Assembly: GCA_965240325.2 (NCBI GenBank)
Contig: OZ251248.1
Coordinates: forward strand, 1-64,000
Length of the DNA stretch: 64,000 nt
Direction of reading: 5' to 3'
Source of the DNA: Rebecca billardiae RCC1528
Taxonomy: Eukaryota > Protista > Haptophyta
Under the pieces are notes generated by a model. That model saw only the letters and a list, made by a program, of their open reading frames with translations, was not told the origin of the DNA and did not search any database. A program made the position numbers and the translations under genes. The stretch's first letter is position 1, and the number at the start of each line of letters is the position of its first letter. Of the stretch, positions 42,493 to 51,372 are shown piece by piece.

Positions 42493-45400
42493 TCACTGCG
42501 CCGGCGGCGGCACGTACGCGCGCACGCGCCTGAGCAGCTCGGCGTGCTCGACCACGCCGCCGCCCTGCGCCGCCTGCCCCGCGCTCAGGCAGAGGACCGC
42601 GTACTGGCCGGTGCCGCCAAAGATGAGGTCGTGGCTCAGCGCGTGCGTGCTGGTGCTGCCGCCGCCGGGCGCGGCGCCCTCGGCGCCGGGCGGCGCGCGG
42701 AGCGTCACCTCGGCGCGCGCGGTGAACATGCCCCACGCGCTCAGCAGCAGCTCGAACGGCGGCTGCGTCTGCTCCACCGCCTTGCGCCGCATGCTCGGGT
42801 GCAGCCGCCACACGACGCGCTCGATGCGCGCCAGCGTGGCCGCGGCGCGCGCGCCGCCCGCCTCGCCGCCCGCGTCGTGCGGCCGCACAAAGAGCGCGAC
42901 GGCGTGGCGCAGCTTGTACCCCGGCCGCGAGAAGGAGGGCGCGAGCGGGCGGCGCGCGGCCTCGTGCCCGTTGCCCAGCTCGAGCCCGACCAGGTCGGCG
43001 CCGCGCGCGTCCGCGCCCTCGAGCCCGGCGCGCACGCGCGACAGGTCGGCGCCGAGCCCGCCGCGCGCGTCGGCGTCGGCGTCGGCGTCGTCGTCGTCGT
43101 CGTCGTCGGCGGCGCCGGGCTCGAGCGCGACGGCGGTGCACAGCGCGCGCGCCGCGATTCGGCTCGCCCGCGCGCCCTCCTCCTCCGCCGGCGCCGCCGC
43201 CCACGCCGCGCCCTCCGCGAGCGCGGCGCGCGCGTCTCGCTCGTTGGCCGCCGCCTCGACCGCCAGCGAGTGCGCGCCGCCGAGCGCGGCGCTCAGGTCG
43301 GCGTGCGCGCGCGCGTGCGCGTCGGCGGCGTCGGCGTGGCGGCCCTGCGCCTCGAGGGCGAGGCCGAGCCACGTGCGCGCCGCCGCGGCGCGCGGGTGCG
43401 CCGGCCACAGCGCGCCCTCGAGCTGCGCCACGCCGCGCGCCAGCTCCGCCTCCGCCTCGGGCGCGCGGCCGAGCGCGAGCGCGCAGAAGCCGCGCTCGCA
43501 CAGCGCGCCGCACAGCGCCGCCGCCGCGCCCGCGTCGCGCGCGTCGGCGTCGGCGGCGGCGCGCTCGAGCAGCGAGACCGCCTGCGTGAGCAGGCCGTGC
43601 GCGCGCGCGTGCTCGTGCCGCGCGCGCAGGTTCGCCGCGAGCGCGACGAGCACGTCGGCGAGCGCGCTCGCGCTCGGCGGCGGCTCGGCGGCGCCGCCCG
43701 GCGGCGCGCCGCCCGCCGCCGGCCGCGCCGTCGCGGCGGCGTGCAGCGCCCGGGCGGCGCGCTGCAGCGTGGCCATCTCGAGGCCGAGGTCGCCCTCGCC
43801 CGAGCACGCGCGGCCGAGCTCGCGCAGGCACGCGCCCAGCCCGCCGCTCGGCGGCTCGGCGCGCGCGCGCGGCGGCAGCAGCAGCAGCGCGGCCGCGCAC
43901 GCGACGCGCACGGCCGCGCCCGCCTCCGCGCCGTCGGACAGCAGAGACGCGCACGCGCACAGCCGCGCGCCCGCTTGGCGCGGCTCGTCCCACCCGCCGT
44001 CGGCGGCGAGCTCGGCGCGGATGCGCGCGGCCGGCGGCGGCGGCGCCTCGCCCTCGCCCGCGCCGCCGCCCTCGCCCAGCGCGGCGCGCAGCCGCTCGAT
44101 CGCCGCGGCCGCGTCGTCGCCGAGCGCCGCGACGCGCGCCGCCTGCGCCGCCTCCTCCGCCTCGAGTGCTGAGAGCTGCGCGCGCGCGGGCTCGAGGCCG
44201 CGCTCGGCGTCGGCGCGGCGCACGAGCGCGGCCGCCCACTCGACGAGCGCCGCCGCGCCCGCGCTCACCTTCGCCACCTCCGCCGCCGCCATCTCGGGCC
44301 GCGCGAGCAGCGCGCGCAGCGCGTCGAGCTGCGCGCCGCTCAGCTGCGCCGAGTCCAGCGCAGCCAGCCGCTCCGCAAGCGCGCCGTCCGCCAGCAGCTT
44401 CCTCGAGCCGGACCAGTCCGGCCGCTCGGGCTTCTCGAGCTTGCGCGAGGCCGACGCGCCGGGCGGCGCGAGCGGGCGCACGCCGAGCGCGGTCGCCACC
44501 GCCTGCGCCGCGAGCTCCACCTGCGGCGGCGGCTTGGCGAGCCCCTTGAGCTCGGAGAGGCGCGTCTTGGAGAGCGAGCCGAGCGCGCGCTCGGCGGCGG
44601 CGGCCGCGTCCGCCGCGGCCTCGAGCGCGGGCGCGGCCTCGGAGACGAGGGCGGCGTGGCGCGCGGCGCGCGCGGACGTCTCCGCCGCCGCGGCCGAGCG
44701 CTGCGCCGCGAGCGACGCGGCGAGCTCCTTCGCCGCCGCCGACGCCTCGGCCGCGCCCTCGACGGCCGCGCCGCCGCCATCGCCGCCCGCCGCCGCCGCC
44801 GCCTCGGCGGGCGCGCCCGCGGCCGCGCCGAGCGGCGCGTCGGCGGGGTCGGCGGGGTCGGCGCCGTGCGCGGCGGGCGGTGGTGCGGCGTCGAGCGCGT
44901 CGTCGACGAGCCGGAGCAGCGCGCGCACGCACTCGGCGCTGCTCTCGTCGCCGCGCGCGCGCTGCGCCGCGCCGCCGCCGCCGCCCGCGGCCGCGGCCGC
45001 GGCGGCGCGCAGCGCGCGCAGCACGAGTCGCAGCGCGTCGGCGCGCGAGCCGCCGCCGCCGCCCTCGCCCTCCGCCGCCGCCTCCGGCCGGGGCTCGCGC
45101 TCGGCCTCGGGCGGCGGCGGGGCGGGCTGCTCCGCGCGCTCGGCGGCGGGCGCGCCGCCCGCCGCCTCCGCCTGCCCGCCGAGCGCCGCGGCCACCACCT
45201 CCGCGCCCAGCGCCGCGAGGGCGCGCGCCATCGCGCCGTAGCCGCCCGCGCCGGCCGCGCGCCAGTGGCCGAGGAGCGTCAGCCGACGCCCGCCGCCGAG
45301 CGCGTGCCGCGCGGTGCGCCACTGCAGCAGCGTCGCGCCGAGCTCGGCGCGCTCCCCCGCCGCCGCGAGCTGCGCCGGCAGCACGCGCGCGCGCCGCTCG

Positions 45401-47877
45401 GCGTCCGCGCGCGCCGGCGGCGCCGCGGCGGCGCCGCCGCCGCTTCCGAGGTTTGCGCCGAGCAGCCGCGCCAGCCGGCGGTGCGCGGCCGCGCGCTCGG
45501 CGGGCGCGCGCAGCCAGAGGGCGGCGGTGGCGGCGGCGGCGGCGCGGTGGTGGAAGGTGAGCAGGCCGCCGCTCGGCGGCCCCGCGGGGCGGAGGAAGGG
45601 GCGCAGCGCGAGGCACACGCGCGCCCAGCGCGCCGCGCTCAACGGCTCCGCGCCCTCCGCCTCCGCCGCGCCCTCCGCCGCGCCCTCCGCCGCGCCGCCG
45701 CCGCGGCCGGTGTCGGCCGGCTGCGGCACCCCGCCCACGCCCGCGTGCACGTCGGTGGAGGCGAGCGCGTCCCTGAGCTCAACCTCGAGCAGCCCCGCCT
45801 CCCCCGCCGCGTGCAGCAGGCACAGCGTGTCGCGCACCAGGCCACCGCTCCGCGGCTGCGGCTGCGGCTGCGGCTGCGGCTGCGGCTGCGGCTGCGGCTG
45901 CGGCTGCGGCGGGGCGGCGCCGGCCTGGTGGGCGGCGTCCGCCTCGTCGTCCTCGAGGGCGATGCGGCGCAGCGCGGCCATCGTCGCGTTCTCCAGCCCG
46001 TCGGGCAGCGCGCGCACCGCCGCGCCCAGCGACTCGAAGCTGCCGTGCAGCCGCAGCTCCTCGCAGCACACCGCCAGCCACAGCGGCACGCCCGCGGACG
46101 CGCGCCCGAGCAGCGCGGCCATGTGCTCCGCGTCCAGCGCCTTGTTGTACCGGCCGAGGTACGCGCGCACGAGCTCGGCGCGCGCCTCCGCGCCGAGCTG
46201 CGCGAGCGAGAGCTCCGACGCGCCGCCCTCCGCGCCGCCGCCGCCGGCGCGCGCGCGCTCGGCCCACGCGCCGTGCGCGCCGCTGCGCTCGAGCGCAGAC
46301 GCGAGCACGACCAGCCCCGGAGGGGGCGGCATCGGCACCCACGCGGCCAGCAGCTGCGCGGGCGCGCCGTCCGCGTCGAGCTGGTCGAGCGCGTCCACGA
46401 AGAGGACCAGCGCGCCGCCGCCGCCCGCCGCGCGCGCCACCGCCGCCGCCTCGAGCGCCGAGCGCGCCGCGGCGGCAATCTGCTCGAGCGGCGCGCCGCC
46501 CAGCTCGGCGCGCAGCGCGGCGCCGCCGGGCAGCGCGGCGCGCAGCGGCGGCGCGCGCAGCAGCCGGAGCAGCAGCGCGCGCGCCGAGGCCGAGCGCCCG
46601 CCGCCCGCGCCGCAGAAGTGCGCGAACGCGCGGCCGCGCCGCTCGGCGGGCGCGTCCGCCGCGCACCACTCGCGCGCCACCGCCGCCAGCACGCTCGACT
46701 TGCCCAGCCCCACGCTGCCCGTCAGCAGCAGCGCGCGCCCGCTGCCCGCGGCGGCGGCGCGCACAACGCCGAGCTCGCGCGCGCGGCCGAGCACCGACGC
46801 GCCGCGCGCCGCCATGAACGCCTCGTGCGCCGCGCCCTCCTCCGCCTCCTCCGCCTCCTCCTCCGCGCCCCCGCCGTCTGCTCCCGCCGCCTCCGCCTCC
46901 GCGCCCTCCGCCTCCGCGCCCTCCGCCTCCTCGGCGTGCGTGGGGAAGTGCTTAGGGCTAGGGCTAGGGTTAGGGTTAGGGCTGGGGTTAGGGTTAGGGT
47001 TGCCCTCCGCCTCCTCGGCGTGCGTGGGGAACTGCGCGGCGATGCGCTCCTGCAGCCACGCCTGCACGCGCGCGCCCAGGCTGCCCGCGCCGCCCTCCAG
47101 CCCCGCGAGGCGCAGCTTGCCGCTGCGCGCGTCCACGCCCGCCGGCGTCGGCTCGTACGCCAGCACGCGGCCGAGCGGCCCGAAGCGGCTGCGCACGCGC
47201 GCGCGCAGCTCCGCGATGTGCGCGGCCGCGAGCGGCGCGCGCTCGACCCAGCCGGGCGGCAGCGCGGCCTCGTCCTCCGCGCGGAAGCGGCGGAGCGCGA
47301 AGAAGGCGTTCGGCCCGCCCGCGCGGTACGCGCCGTGCAGCACCTCCATCGCCGTCACCGAGAAGCCGTCCACCCAGCCGTACGCCGCCGCCGCCTCTGC
47401 GGGCACGTCCGCAGCCGCGGGTGCCCAGCCGTACCGGCTGCCGAGCAGGTTGAGAAAAAACGGCTCGCCGTTGGCCTCGCGGCAGCGGTCGAGCTCGCCG
47501 AGGCACGCGGCGAGCGTCTGCGCCGTGCTCGCGTCGCGCTGCACCCCCCAGCGCAGGTCGCACTCGAGCACGTGCACGCGCCGCCCCTCCGCCCACGCGC
47601 GCACCGCGGGCAGCACGCGCTTGACCAGCAGCTCGCGCTCGGCGTGGAAGTCCACAAACGTCGAGGAGACGAACACGCGCACCACGCGCCAGCCGCGGCC
47701 GCGGAGCGGGACGGGGGGCGGCGGCGGGGGCGGCGTGGGCGGCACGCTCGCCTCCGCCACCGCCCACGCCGCCGCCACCGCCGCCGCCGCCGCCTCCGCG
47801 CTCAGCGGCGAAGCGGGCGGCGGCAAAGCGCCGCCGCCGTGCGACGGCGCGGGCGGCGCGCCGTGCGCCGCGCCGCC

Positions 47878-47908
<31 letters not shown>

Positions 47909-48421
47909 CCGTCGCCGCCGTGCGCGCCGCCACCGTCGCCGCCGTGCGCGCCACCGCCGCCACCGCCGCGCGGCGAGGGCGCGCGCCGCGCCTTGGCATC
48001 GCCCCCGCCGCCCGACGCGCGCCGCGAGCCGCCACCGCCGCCGCCGCCGCCGCCGCCGGCCGAGGGCGATGCCGCGCGCGCGCCCGCGCCGCGGCCCGCG
48101 CTGCCGGCGCGCGCGGGCGAGGCCGCGCGCGCGGGCGAGGCCGCGCGCGCGGGCGAGGCCGCCCGCGCGGGCGAGGCCGCCCGCGCGGGCGAGGCCCCGC
48201 GCGCGGGCGAGCCGCTGCGGCGGTGCGGCCGGCCGCCGCCCTCGGCCGCGTCTGCCGGCGCGCGGCCGATCGCTCGCGTCGCGCGCAGCGGCGCGCCGGC
48301 GCCGCCGCCGGCGCCGTCGGCGCCGGGCGGCGCGGGGAGCTTGGCCGCGGCGCGGCGCTGCGCCCCCGCCGCGCCCGCGTTCGCGCTCGCGCGCGGCGGC
48401 CGGTTCGGGCTGGGCGAGCGC

Positions 48422-48453
<32 letters not shown>

Positions 48454-48807
48454 CCCGGGCGGCGAGGGCACCGCGCGCGACGCGCCGTGCCCGCTCTGCC
48501 GCGCGGGCGGCAGCGAGACGCTCACGCCGCCGCCGCGGTGGTAGGCGTGCAGCGCCTCCACGCGCGCGCTCAGCTGCGGGCGCACCTCGCGCAGCGCCTG
48601 CTGGCCCGGCGTGGGCCGCGAGCGGCCGGGCAGGAAGGCTCGGTGCGTGCCGTCGCGCGCCGCGCGCGCCTGCGCGCCGCTGCGCGGCGGCGAGCGCGGC
48701 GGCGCGGGCGGCGAGCTGCGCCGGCGGGCGGGCGACGCGCTCCGCCAGCGCGCGGGCGAGCCCGCCTGCTCGCCGCTCGCGCGCCGACGCCTGGCCGGGC
48801 TCGACAT
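42493..48807 (-). CDS. STAND NTPase: DUF4062-NACHT-dynein microtubule-binding stalk-TPR-YEATS (TEP1/NPHP3-like core), 2104 aa
   Basis: VRVFVSSTFVDFHAERELL...DLRWGV (DUF4062); Walker A GSVGLGKS; Walker B LFVDALDQLD. MTBD-like at ~44160-44640; TPR-like helices (LWPAHPRAA, LGGAHSLA); YEATS-like at ~42600-42910. One continuous ORF. Confidence 0.88.
46952..47001 (+). repeat. Telomeric-repeat insertion inside the NACHT CDS
   Basis: 8 x (T/C)TAGGG-like units plus TT (50 bp), between 34-bp direct repeats 46918-46951 and 47002-47035. Confidence 0.92.
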
Positions 48808-49075
48808 GGTGGGGCGCGCGGCCGGGCTGGGCTTCTTCGTTCGGGCGCTGAACCGGATGGAAATGACGAAGCCGACGACGGAAACGACGGCCGTCGGGTC
48901 ATCACAGTACGTTCAATGTCGAGAGCATGCAACGGTCGTCATACGCGCTACAGTAGGCCGGCGCGGACGGACGCGTGGGCGAGAGGCCAGCCAGTGCGAG
49001 ACGGCGGCGCGCACACGGCCAGGTCGCAGCCACAGGCAGCGCCCGGACACTCGCGGCTGCACTCACTCGGCCTGA

Positions 49076-49288
49076 TCAGAACTGGTCGTCGGAGCCGAGG
49101 TCGTCGCCGTCGTCGTCCTCGTCGTCGTCGTCGTCCTCCTCCTCCTCGTCCTCGTCGTCGTCGATCAGCTCGTCCTCCTCCAGCTGCTGCTGCCGGCCGG
49201 CGCCGCCGCCGATCCCCATGCCGCCGCGCGCCGCGCCGCCGCCGCCGCCGCCGCCGCCGCCCATCGCGGGCCCGCGCTCGATCTCCGG

Positions 49289-49327
<39 letters not shown>

Positions 49328-51208
49328 CTCGTCGGTCTCGTCCTCCTCCTCCCCGCTGTCCGACTCCGCCGGGTTCATCGAGCCGTGCACCACGCCCGAG
49401 TCGACGCCGTCGTCGTACCCGCCCGCGTCGCCGCGCGGCCGGCGCAGGCCCGCGCCGCCCGGCCGCTTGGTCGGGCGCGCGCGCCCGCTGGAGGAGACGC
49501 GCGAGCCGCCGCCGCCGTCGGCGCTCTCGCCGCCCGCGCCGTGCACGCCGCCGCCGTCGTGCTGCGCGTCGTTCATCAGCGCGTCGTCGATCGCCTGCTC
49601 GTCGATCTGCGCGCGGCGGCGGGCGGCGGGCGGGCGTCGGTTTGGCGAGCGGCGGTGAGCGGCGGTGAGGGCGCGGCGGTGAGGGCGGGGCGGGCGCGCT
49701 CGCGGCGGCGGCGGCGTGGCGGCGCGCACCTGCGCCTGCCCGCGCAGCACGCGCAGCTCCTCCTCGCGCAGCCGCTTCTGCATCGCCTTGAGCTGCCTGT
49801 CGTGCTCCTCCAGCCGCTCCTGCTCGGCGCCGTGCACCTTGTCCAGCTCGGCCTCGAGGAACTGCAGGTTGCGCCAGTTGCCGAGGTACAGCTCGTACTG
49901 CTTGGAGAGCGAGGCCTCGAGGCGCTCGTACTCCTCCATGAACGCGGGGCGCACGGCCTGCAGCGAGGAGAGCCGCTTCTGGTGCCGCTCCAGCTCGTTC
50001 TTCCGCTTCTCGATCTGCGCGGCGCGCGCGGCCGCGAGCGCGCGCGCGCGAGCCGCGGGCGGCGCGCGTGGGCCGGCGCCACCCGCCCGGCGCGGCCGCG
50101 CCGTGCGCGCGCTCGCTCGTTGGTGTGCGCACCTTGTTGTTGAGCGAGGCCTCGTCCTTGGAGACGTTGGCGACCATCTTCTCCATCTCCTCGAGCTGCG
50201 CGCCCATGCTCTCCGCCTGCTGCCCCAGCCGGCGCTGCACGTCGCCGATCTCGAGCGAGCGCGAGAGTGCGCGCTGGTGCGCCTCGCGCGCCTCCGGGTG
50301 CAGCTCGAGCAGCTCGTACAGCTTGGCGCTGGCGGGCGGGGCACAGCGCACGCGGCGTGGGAGGAGCGCGCCTCAGCCCGCGCGGGGCGGGCCGCGCGGC
50401 GGGCGCGTCGGCGGGGCCGCGCCCGGACTCACCCGGACTTGACAATGTCTGCGGCGAGCGCGCGCGTCGTCTTGAGGTCGGAGAACTTGGCGCCGCCCGC
50501 CGTGTCCGGGATGAGCGCCTCGTCCTCGCCGCCGCCGCCGCCCGAGACCGCCGCGGCCTCGGCCTGCTTGAACGCGTCGTACAGCACCGTCGCGATCTTG
50601 AGCAGCTCCTTCACCGCGTACCTGCGCGCACCGGCGGCGGCGGCGCGGGGCGGCGGCGCGCGGCGGCGGCGGCGGGCGGCGGGCGGCGCGCGGCGGCACG
50701 GCGTTCGCGCGCGGTCAGTGCGGCCAGCGAGCCCGCGCGCGCCCACCCAGCCGCGCCCACCCCCCACGCCCGCCCAGCGCACCGCCCGCCGCGCGCGGCG
50801 CACCCGTTCGCGGAGTAGAGGTTCTTGATGTTGAGCTTGATGCGCCCCTTGAGCAGCATCGCCTGCGCGGTCGACTTGAGGAAGTGCACGCGGTCCGACT
50901 CGGTCTCGATGTTGTCGTCGATGTCGATGGACGAGTCGTACCGGACGACGAGCCAGCCTGCACGCCGCGCGCGCCGCGCGCACCCGCACGCCGCGCGCCG
51001 CCGCCGCGCGTGAGCCACGCGCCGCCGCGCGGCCGTGCGGTGCGCACGGCGCGGCGCGCCTGCCGTGCGCCTGCGCCTGCGCGCGCGCACCGAGCAGGTC
51101 GGCGACGAGCTCAAAGTTGGGCGAGCGGAAGGACTGCACCGAGACGAGGTGCGGGTACCCGAGGGCCCGCATGATCTCGGTGAAGTTGCGCAGCTCGCGG
51201 TACGACAT
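49076..51208 (-). CDS. CLUAP1: Clusterin-associated protein 1 / IFT38, 6 exons
   Basis: [19 protein letters not shown]...[42 protein letters not shown] and an acidic tail. Exons 51208-51091, 50957-50804, 50621-50433, 50328-50133, 50014-49730, 49606-49076. Confidence 0.96.
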
Positions 51209-51372
51209 GGCGTCGCGGCGCGGCGGGGCCGGGCTGCGCCCCGCTGGCAGGTTGGGCGACCGCCACCGCTGCTCCAAGTTTCAACGTCTCGTCCGGCGCT
51301 CCGGTCGAGAGCCCGGACTCCCCCCGGCCCCCGGCCGCTGGGCTGCGCGGATTCCAGCGTGTTCACTGCGCG
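51209..51372. promoter_or_regulatory. Putative bidirectional promoter (CLUAP1 / desaturase-like gene)
   Basis: Only 164 bp between divergent start codons; inferred from geometry. Confidence 0.5.

Follow-up and report, generated by a model that had tools for sequence, protein, structure and literature searches.

We investigated a 6.3-kb open reading frame (ORF) of the haptophyte Rebecca billardiae RCC1528 that appears to encode a STAND-type nucleotide switch carrying the microtubule-binding stalk of a dynein. The window, i.e., the whole stretch of DNA that was analysed, comprises 64,000 nucleotides (assembly GCA_965240325.2, contig OZ251248.1, positions 1 to 64,000 of the forward strand). The ORF, referred to here as the STAND-dynein-YEATS ORF, lies on the minus strand at 42493-48807, with its ATG at 48807 and its stop codon at 42493, and consists of 2104 codons plus the stop. 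An earlier reading of the same DNA, made from its letters alone (the sequence-only reading), had described an NLR-like STAND protein with a dynein stalk and a C-terminal YEATS domain at 42493-47700; its frame is that of the ORF, and its start is the point at which the DUF4062 domain begins (amino acid, aa, 372). All of the motifs it quoted are present in the translation. The features of the locus are as follows (GC3, GC content at third codon positions; MTBD, microtubule-binding domain).

42493..48807, minus strand: whole ORF, one uninterrupted coding exon by codon-position GC periodicity
47695..48807, minus strand: N-terminal low-complexity region, aa 1-371, rich in Arg, Ser, Pro, Gly and Ala, GC3 0.90-1.00 in frame
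47194..47694, minus strand: DUF4062 domain, TIR-like and of NADase type, aa 372-538, from Pfam DUF4062 and the match to the TEP1 structure
46918..47031, minus strand: in-frame insertion in the DUF4062-NACHT linker, aa 593-630, from direct reading of the sequence, missing in the bacterial relative P0157
46156..46791, minus strand: STAND P-loop NTPase (NACHT-type), aa 673-884, from AAA_16 and the Walker motifs
45763..46155, minus strand: helical/winged-helix region, aa 885-1015, from the BLASTP alignment to P0157, which extends to ~aa 1015, with an inserted (PQ)n run
44065..44772, minus strand: dynein-type antiparallel coiled-coil stalk, arms of ~65 residues, carrying the MTBD at the tip, aa 1346-1581, from Pfam MT, PDB, AlphaFold2, Foldseek and Atlas
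44188..44574, minus strand: MTBD core, aa 1412-1540, from column conservation in the MTBD alignment
43018..44055, minus strand: helical TPR-like region, aa 1585-1930, with the best TPR_12 match at aa 1768-1836 (43300-43506) and Atlas feature matches
42583..43005, minus strand: YEATS-family domain, ~aa 1935-2075, with the Pfam core at aa 1994-2042 (42682-42828)
49076-51277, minus strand: multi-exon IFT38/Cluap1 gene, from Pfam Cluap1 (E = 4e-17 and 4e-23 on two ORF pieces)

The GC content of this region is 80-87% and ORFs of more than 1000 codons are present in several frames on both strands, so that the length of an ORF is by itself no proof of a gene. Codon-position composition is more telling. 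Between 48807 and 42508, almost all 150-nt windows have GC3 of 0.96-1.00 and second-position GC (GC2) of ~0.5-0.7 in a constant phase, and windows of 50 codons return the same values (GC3 0.96-1.00, GC2 ~0.5-0.7) from ~aa 350 to the C-terminus. Immediately past the stop codon, GC3 collapses to 0.74 and the periodicity is gone (150-nt scan of the minus strand, 51507-42007). The pattern is also missing from the 48808-49107 gap and from neighbouring introns and intergenic DNA, and across the multi-exon IFT38 gene it changes phase, with flat stretches between. DNA composition thus predicts the 6.3-kb ORF to be a single uninterrupted coding exon, and the architecture described below very probably belongs to one protein. 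The first Met after M1 is M487, which falls within DUF4062, the first domain; translation must therefore begin at 48807 or further upstream in another exon. GC3 stays at 0.90-1.00 throughout aa 1-371, so that this low-complexity extension is probably translated as well. The Pfam profile search returned no family match in aa 1-371. Six SPARAA-type repeats and a poly-Gly run are visible there.

The element that sets this protein apart is the stalk between its nucleotide-binding module and its C-terminal third. Pfam MT matches aa 1395-1567 (E = 4.7e-7, 29.6 bits against a cut-off of 24) over profile positions 84-245 of 344, which represent the MTBD and the inner portions of both coiled-coil arms. 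When aa 1380-1600 was searched against PDB sequences, dynein heavy chains or dynein MTBD constructs accounted for 64 of the 64 matches; the stalk/MTBD of human DNAH1 ranked first (8i3j, E = 9.5e-14, bias 0.0), ahead of the other single-headed inner-arm dyneins DHC9, DNAH3 and DNAH6, with cytoplasmic and outer-arm dyneins lower. A 45-sequence MTBD alignment has 60 columns with conservation of at least 60%; our protein keeps 36 of them, and these include most of the columns with conservation of at least 90%. The core retains K1414, E1419, K1421, P1426, P1427, V1430, W1465, S1515, W1524 and P1540, and the hallmarks of the domain are kept: the pair of prolines at the base of the stalk, both tryptophans, and all five basic residues of the consensus (K1421, K1425, R1469, K1470 and K1513).

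AlphaFold2, run with the same 45 aligned sequences, returned a confident hairpin (predicted local distance difference test, pLDDT, 87.3; predicted template modelling score, pTM, 0.75), a model that comes from a dynein-rich alignment and hence is not independent of the sequence homology. In the hairpin, a helix of 65 residues leads into a helical bundle, from which a helix of 66 residues returns. Its only poorly defined part is a 20-residue insert (aa 1445-1464, low pLDDT) that aligns with the flap region of DNAH1. Foldseek superposed the model on 5ayh (template modelling score, TM, 0.63/0.64; root-mean-square deviation 2.8 over 202 columns) and also on 8i3j, 3err and 6rzb, and the Atlas fold search gave TM 0.78 to MT clusters. 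Judged by these comparisons of sequence and predicted fold, aa 1346-1581 is a true dynein stalk/MTBD homolog, as the sequence-only reading had proposed, and the kept basic positions lend indirect support to microtubule binding. None of the dynein-specific AAA_6/7/8/9, DHC_N and Dynein_C models, which true dynein fragments do match, matched the protein. We considered whether the ORF might itself be a dynein and rejected this, no ring, linker or C-terminal dynein model having matched.

At the other end of the nucleotide module lies the probable output of the protein, which the sequence-only reading had missed. Pfam DUF4062 matches with E = 2.3e-8 (34.6 bits against a cut-off of 24.7 in the whole-protein profile search), and this domain has a single PDB sequence match, to the TIR-like domain of human TEP1 (11gz_A, E = 1.1e-22, bias 0). 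DUF4062 is a TIR-like NADase that adjoins a NACHT ATPase in human TEP1, NWD1, NWD2 and NPHP3, and in TEP1 E1008 is catalytic whereas R908 and R976 support activity, which R908A lowers (bioRxiv 10.64898/2026.05.01.722283). With a chain-to-protein numbering offset of 893, all four named TEP1 residues land on the expected letters. The catalytic E1008 corresponds to E488 (within SVTAMEV) and R976 to R458 (within GSRYG), both of them kept. The specific activity of the isolated TEP1 domain rises with concentration, consistent with activation driven by oligomerisation (bioRxiv 10.64898/2026.05.01.722283). NAD(P)+ hydrolysis by DUF4062 is a likely candidate for the output of the STAND-dynein-YEATS protein.

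DUF4062 is followed by an acidic linker and then by a P-loop NTPase that AAA_16 recognises above its cut-off (E = 3.3e-9, 37.9 bits against 32.6, whole-protein profile search). Walker A (GLGK703S) and Walker B (inside LFVDALDQLD, aa 802-811) are both intact; a PDB sequence search with the same region yielded a chance P-loop match only. The block made of DUF4062, P-loop and helical module aligns with P0157, a DUF4062-NACHT-TPR protein of 1637 aa, at 32% identity (BLASTP, E = 1e-47) as far as ~aa 1015. Beyond the stalk, aa 1585-1930 are weakly indicated to be TPR-like: their Atlas feature matches (score 0.95) are mostly TPR clusters, with recognition slightly under threshold, and DUF4062-NACHT relatives have TPR_12 or TPR_MalT at the corresponding position. 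By layout the protein would group with the DUF4062-NACHT-repeat STAND proteins, the NACHT and TPR models both being below cut-off.

Repeat insertions are present in this part of the coding sequence. The acidic linker between DUF4062 and the P-loop holds 54 nt of telomere-like AACCCT repeats (46948-47001) flanked by two exact 30-nt copies (47002-47031 and 46918-46947). A (Pro-Gln)n run at aa 967-984 (~45850-45920, minus strand) lies in the helical module that follows the P-loop, opposite a gap in P0157, and is a further simple-repeat expansion inside coding sequence.

The C-terminal segment is recognised by both YEATS models of Pfam, above cut-off in the whole protein (pYEATS, 28.2 bits against 26.9; YEATS, 25.0 bits against 22) and more strongly with the C-terminal piece alone (pYEATS, E = 3.6e-7, 30.4 bits; YEATS, E = 3.1e-6, 27.5 bits). 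YEATS chains make up 27 of the 28 PDB matches of the piece, the best being YEATS2 (E = 3.5e-3), and YEATS clusters make up 28 of its 30 Atlas feature neighbours (score 0.94). In the YEATS2 alignment, H2003-P-S2005-M2006 falls on HPSY and W2025-G-M-F2028 (AWGMF) on GWGEF, so the pocket keeps H2003, S2005, W2025, G2026 and F2028. Eukaryotic YEATS clusters in the Atlas commonly match both Pfam models, and the pYEATS match is therefore no sign of a prokaryotic origin. We consider the segment a YEATS family member at the level of sequence, with an incomplete aromatic cage; the sequence-only reading had likewise named a YEATS domain with one cage aromatic, in its wording the cage Phe, changed to Met. 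Elsewhere, pYEATS has been cited as the C-terminal ligand-binding sensor of NTPase-based immune systems (bioRxiv 10.64898/2026.10.19.760177).

The architecture appears to be unique within the databases and literature searched, which agrees with the earlier statement that no described protein has this combination. Eight relatives of the DUF4062-P-loop part have DUF4062 together with AAA/NACHT and/or TPR (four of the eight list NACHT), and MT and YEATS are absent from all eight in their precomputed Pfam lists. The closest DUF4062-STAND-TPR relatives retrieved, P0159, P0160 and P0163, adjoin bacterial-type genes (MscL, MFS and ribosomal L12), and one contig carries two adjacent DUF4062 STAND genes, one with WD40 and the other without. 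Horizontal transfer from bacteria was considered from these neighbourhoods and is not claimed, because word-based prefiltering is biased towards bacterial proteins that are GC-rich and Ala-rich. HMMER, run exhaustively with the MTBD piece against 1.84 billion representatives, found 285 matches at E <= 1e-3, and none of the best 150 of these resembles the DUF4062, P-loop, TPR or YEATS parts of our protein. A word-indexed homolog search with the MTBD region, confined to proteins of 1157-3682 aa, gave no match and is uninformative, being probably swamped by Ala-rich words; the YEATS piece alone had no match in the same database, and a scan of metagenome contigs with a back-translated YEATS pattern gave 349 pattern matches, of which 0 were confirmed. 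No PADLOC model matched the protein, and the NCBIfam search gave nothing meaningful.

The HMMER search with the MTBD piece also revealed that dynein MTBDs exist apart from the motor. The dynein MTBD is regarded as exclusive to the dynein motor. The top matches of the search are non-dyneins (P0001, of 1207 aa, P0002, P0003, P0012, P0013, P0018 and others), and the per-domain scores of our protein are alike against free MTBD modules and against true dyneins. These are tandem-MTBD proteins, made up of two to six MT modules whose coiled-coil arms are short, and they match no further Pfam domain. Nine clusters, mostly tandem-MTBD, were looked up; they come from JGI and Logan contigs of ~1.6-4 kb, MMETSP and EukProt, and one cluster among them, P0033, is a fragment of a dynein and stems from an NCBI genome. 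Two further proteins, P0075 (2020 aa) and P0099 (1019 aa), join ankyrin repeats to one MTBD, and in an oomycete Atlas cluster Impact_N is found in 33% of the members and MT in 14%. In the literature searched we found no description of the tandem-MTBD family, of a dynein MTBD outside dyneins, or of the present architecture. The dynein MTBD thus appears to be in use as a free docking module across several lineages of protists, and its presence in a STAND protein is thereby less isolated and more believable. In a tree of 166 MTBD modules, our protein falls in no well-supported clade, and its nearest neighbours by path are dyneins of ~4000-4150 aa. The tree does not support an origin from the tandem-MTBD family, and an origin from inner-arm dyneins is only suggested.

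The gene immediately upstream on the same strand is IFT38, as the sequence-only reading had it: the Cluap1 profile matches, and the IFT38 stop codon at 49076 lies ~270 nt upstream of the ATG of the STAND gene. The inner-arm type of the MTBD and this neighbour hint weakly at the flagellum.

How might such a protein work? In STAND proteins the C-terminal repeats keep the molecule inactive, and ligand binding leads to opening, nucleotide exchange and oligomerisation, by which the N-terminal effectors are gathered. From this scheme, together with the concentration-dependent activity of TEP1, we propose a microtubule-docked STAND switch with an NADase output and a TPR/YEATS sensor, a reading to which we assign an overall probability of about 0.55. 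The functional side of the sequence-only reading, with docking on microtubules and recognition of acylated lysines, perhaps those of tubulin, or else an integrated decoy, is plausible. A shortened stalk with an axonemal-type MTBD is built in between the nucleotide module and the TPR-like array, with YEATS at the C-terminus. The analysis shows what the domains are, how they are ordered and that they share one continuous frame; microtubule binding, NADase activity, the ligand and an immune or a ciliary role are inferred. The MTBD hairpin would hold the resting protein on cytoplasmic or flagellar microtubules, and the TPR-like array and the YEATS pocket would form the sensing end, for an acylated lysine or another small ligand. 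Ligand binding would free the P-loop module for nucleotide exchange and oligomerisation, and oligomerisation would gather the DUF4062 domains, which may then hydrolyse NAD(P)+ and bring about local signalling or cell death. For this sequence of events taken by itself our confidence is tentative, at a little under even odds.

Several observations weigh against this proposal. At the output end, the position of TEP1 R908 is occupied by V385 and the BB-loop residue R954 is not retained. Three of the four human DUF4062-NACHT proteins, i.e., full-length NWD1, NWD2 and NPHP3, are inactive in vitro (bioRxiv 10.64898/2026.05.01.722283). The NACHT model scores 19 bits (E = 1.3e-3) against a cut-off of 26.7, so that of the "DUF4062-NACHT" in the sequence-only reading DUF4062 and a STAND P-loop stand, both with models above cut-off, and the name NACHT is slightly overstated. 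TPR_12, searched with the C-terminal piece, is likewise below its cut-off (E = 3.6e-4, 21.1 bits against 30.1), and the TPR-like repeats of that reading hold up weakly. In the MTBD, a consensus Tyr is R1531, a consensus Phe is M1506, and YDKDNI is replaced by LDSAQL, and the stalk model leans on its alignment as already stated. The aromatic after HPS in the YEATS pocket (Tyr in YEATS2) is M2006, which leaves Met for one cage aromatic, and single-sequence AlphaFold2 of the YEATS piece is unusable (pLDDT 36), leaving that fold unconfirmed. The whole protein is 27% Ala and 13% Gly, with large stretches of low complexity. Finally, no ortholog of the same architecture was found in the searches made.

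An integrated-decoy immune receptor would account for the same parts differently. The MTBD and YEATS would be baits copied from a flagellar dynein and a chromatin reader, with no action of their own on microtubules or acyl-lysines, and attack on them by a viral or parasite effector would trip the switch and its NADase. A STAND module preceded by a TIR-like effector domain is a layout typical of immune receptors, and the lack of any ortholog with this layout is as expected for a fast-evolving, lineage-specific receptor; DUF4062 proteins, moreover, act in bacterial antiphage defence (bioRxiv 10.64898/2026.05.01.722283). However, the MTBD retains the residues of a working MTBD, including the basic positions, which a bait need not do, although a bait stays compatible with them. 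The protein, as said, matched no PADLOC model, and we know of no effector that targets the dynein MTBD. We regard the decoy as unlikely. It would also be possible to see in the protein a structural or signalling component of the flagellum or cilium, an analogue of NPHP3 that sits on axonemal doublets through its inner-arm-type MTBD and has little or no role in NAD hydrolysis or cell death. Human NPHP3 has DUF4062 adjoining NACHT and is inactive as an NADase in vitro (bioRxiv 10.64898/2026.05.01.722283). The MTBD is closest to those of inner-arm axonemal dyneins and has an insert at the flap position, IFT38 ends 270 nt upstream of the gene in the same orientation, and P0157 gives a faint NPHP3_hel match. 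In our protein, however, neither NPHP3_N nor NPHP3_hel gave a match with E of 1 or less, the NADase fold retains its catalytic Glu, and adjacency of eukaryotic genes is weak evidence of shared function. NPHP3 uses myristoylation at Gly2, and our protein starts MSS, with no Gly2. Orthology with NPHP3 was rejected on the missing models and the missing Gly2, and the ciliary alternative as a whole is, in our judgement, rather unlikely.

The locus might also be an artefact or a decaying gene, with two genes, or a gene and a captured dynein fragment, brought into frame by chance, or it might not be expressed. Such doubts are fed by the GC content of 80-87%, at which stop codons are rare and several other frames also hold ORFs longer than 1000 codons, by a gene model known from DNA alone, and by the telomere-like insertion and the long low-complexity linkers inside the ORF. 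They are countered by the codon-position pattern, which runs in one phase through all of the linkers (GC3 ~1.0, GC2 ~0.6) and collapses exactly at the stop, by five homology-supported modules that share one frame in canonical N-to-C order, and by the retention of key catalytic and structural residues. We therefore consider an artefact very improbable, and the microtubule-docked switch is retained as the preferred reading.

A bolder version of the microtubule-docked switch follows from the place of the stalk. Its arms join the nucleotide module to the sensor, and one may speculate that a shift in their registry could couple microtubule binding to the switch. The stalk-MTBD hairpin would then be a working, registry-coupled allosteric element in a non-motor ATPase, YEATS would read lysine acylation of tubulin or of microtubule-associated proteins, and the protein would guard the microtubule or flagellar cytoskeleton, its TIR-like NADase being fired by any disturbance of the lattice or of its state of modification; the MTBD itself would be an unrecognised mobile module for microtubule docking in several protist families. 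As a whole this version is improbable, and registry-shift coupling is the most interesting of the readings and the least supported. If the MTBD module binds microtubules in these settings, its carriers would form a new class of protist microtubule-associated proteins, and ours would to our knowledge be the first STAND/NLR-type switch with a direct link to the microtubule lattice. The protein provides natural tests of two ideas, the registry-shift allostery of the stalk with a different ATPase and the reading of modifications by YEATS outside chromatin. What is new here is a STAND/NLR switch with two modules that the literature searched does not report together nor, for the MTBD, outside the dyneins.

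Compared with known systems, our protein shares with TEP1, NWD1, NWD2, NPHP3 and the bacterial P0157 an N-terminal DUF4062 that precedes a STAND P-loop and helical module and is followed by repeats, in our protein putative ones; its weakly supported TPR-like C-terminus would correspond to the TPR of NPHP3 and the bacterial relatives. Unlike TEP1 and the NWD proteins, it is without TROVE, vWA and WD40 in the profile search; it differs from NPHP3 in the absent NPHP3_N and NPHP3_hel matches, and it adds to the DUF4062-NACHT plan a 371-residue low-complexity N-terminus and repeat insertions. With DNAH1/IAD-d, DHC9, DNAH3 and DNAH6 it has in common the antiparallel hairpin, the six-helix MTBD, the hallmark Pro, Trp and Lys residues and the insert at the flap position. 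Its stalk, however, is ~2/3 of the dynein length, and any drive would come from the STAND P-loop and not from an AAA ring. The free-MTBD proteins likewise hold their MTBD on short arms outside a motor, but they are without STAND, DUF4062 and YEATS. With YEATS2, AF9, Taf14 and GAS41 it shares matches to the family profiles, and its HPS and WG-F pocket motifs align with those of YEATS2. In contrast to the chromatin readers of this family, it has its YEATS domain joined to a STAND NTPase and to an MTBD in place of chromatin machinery.

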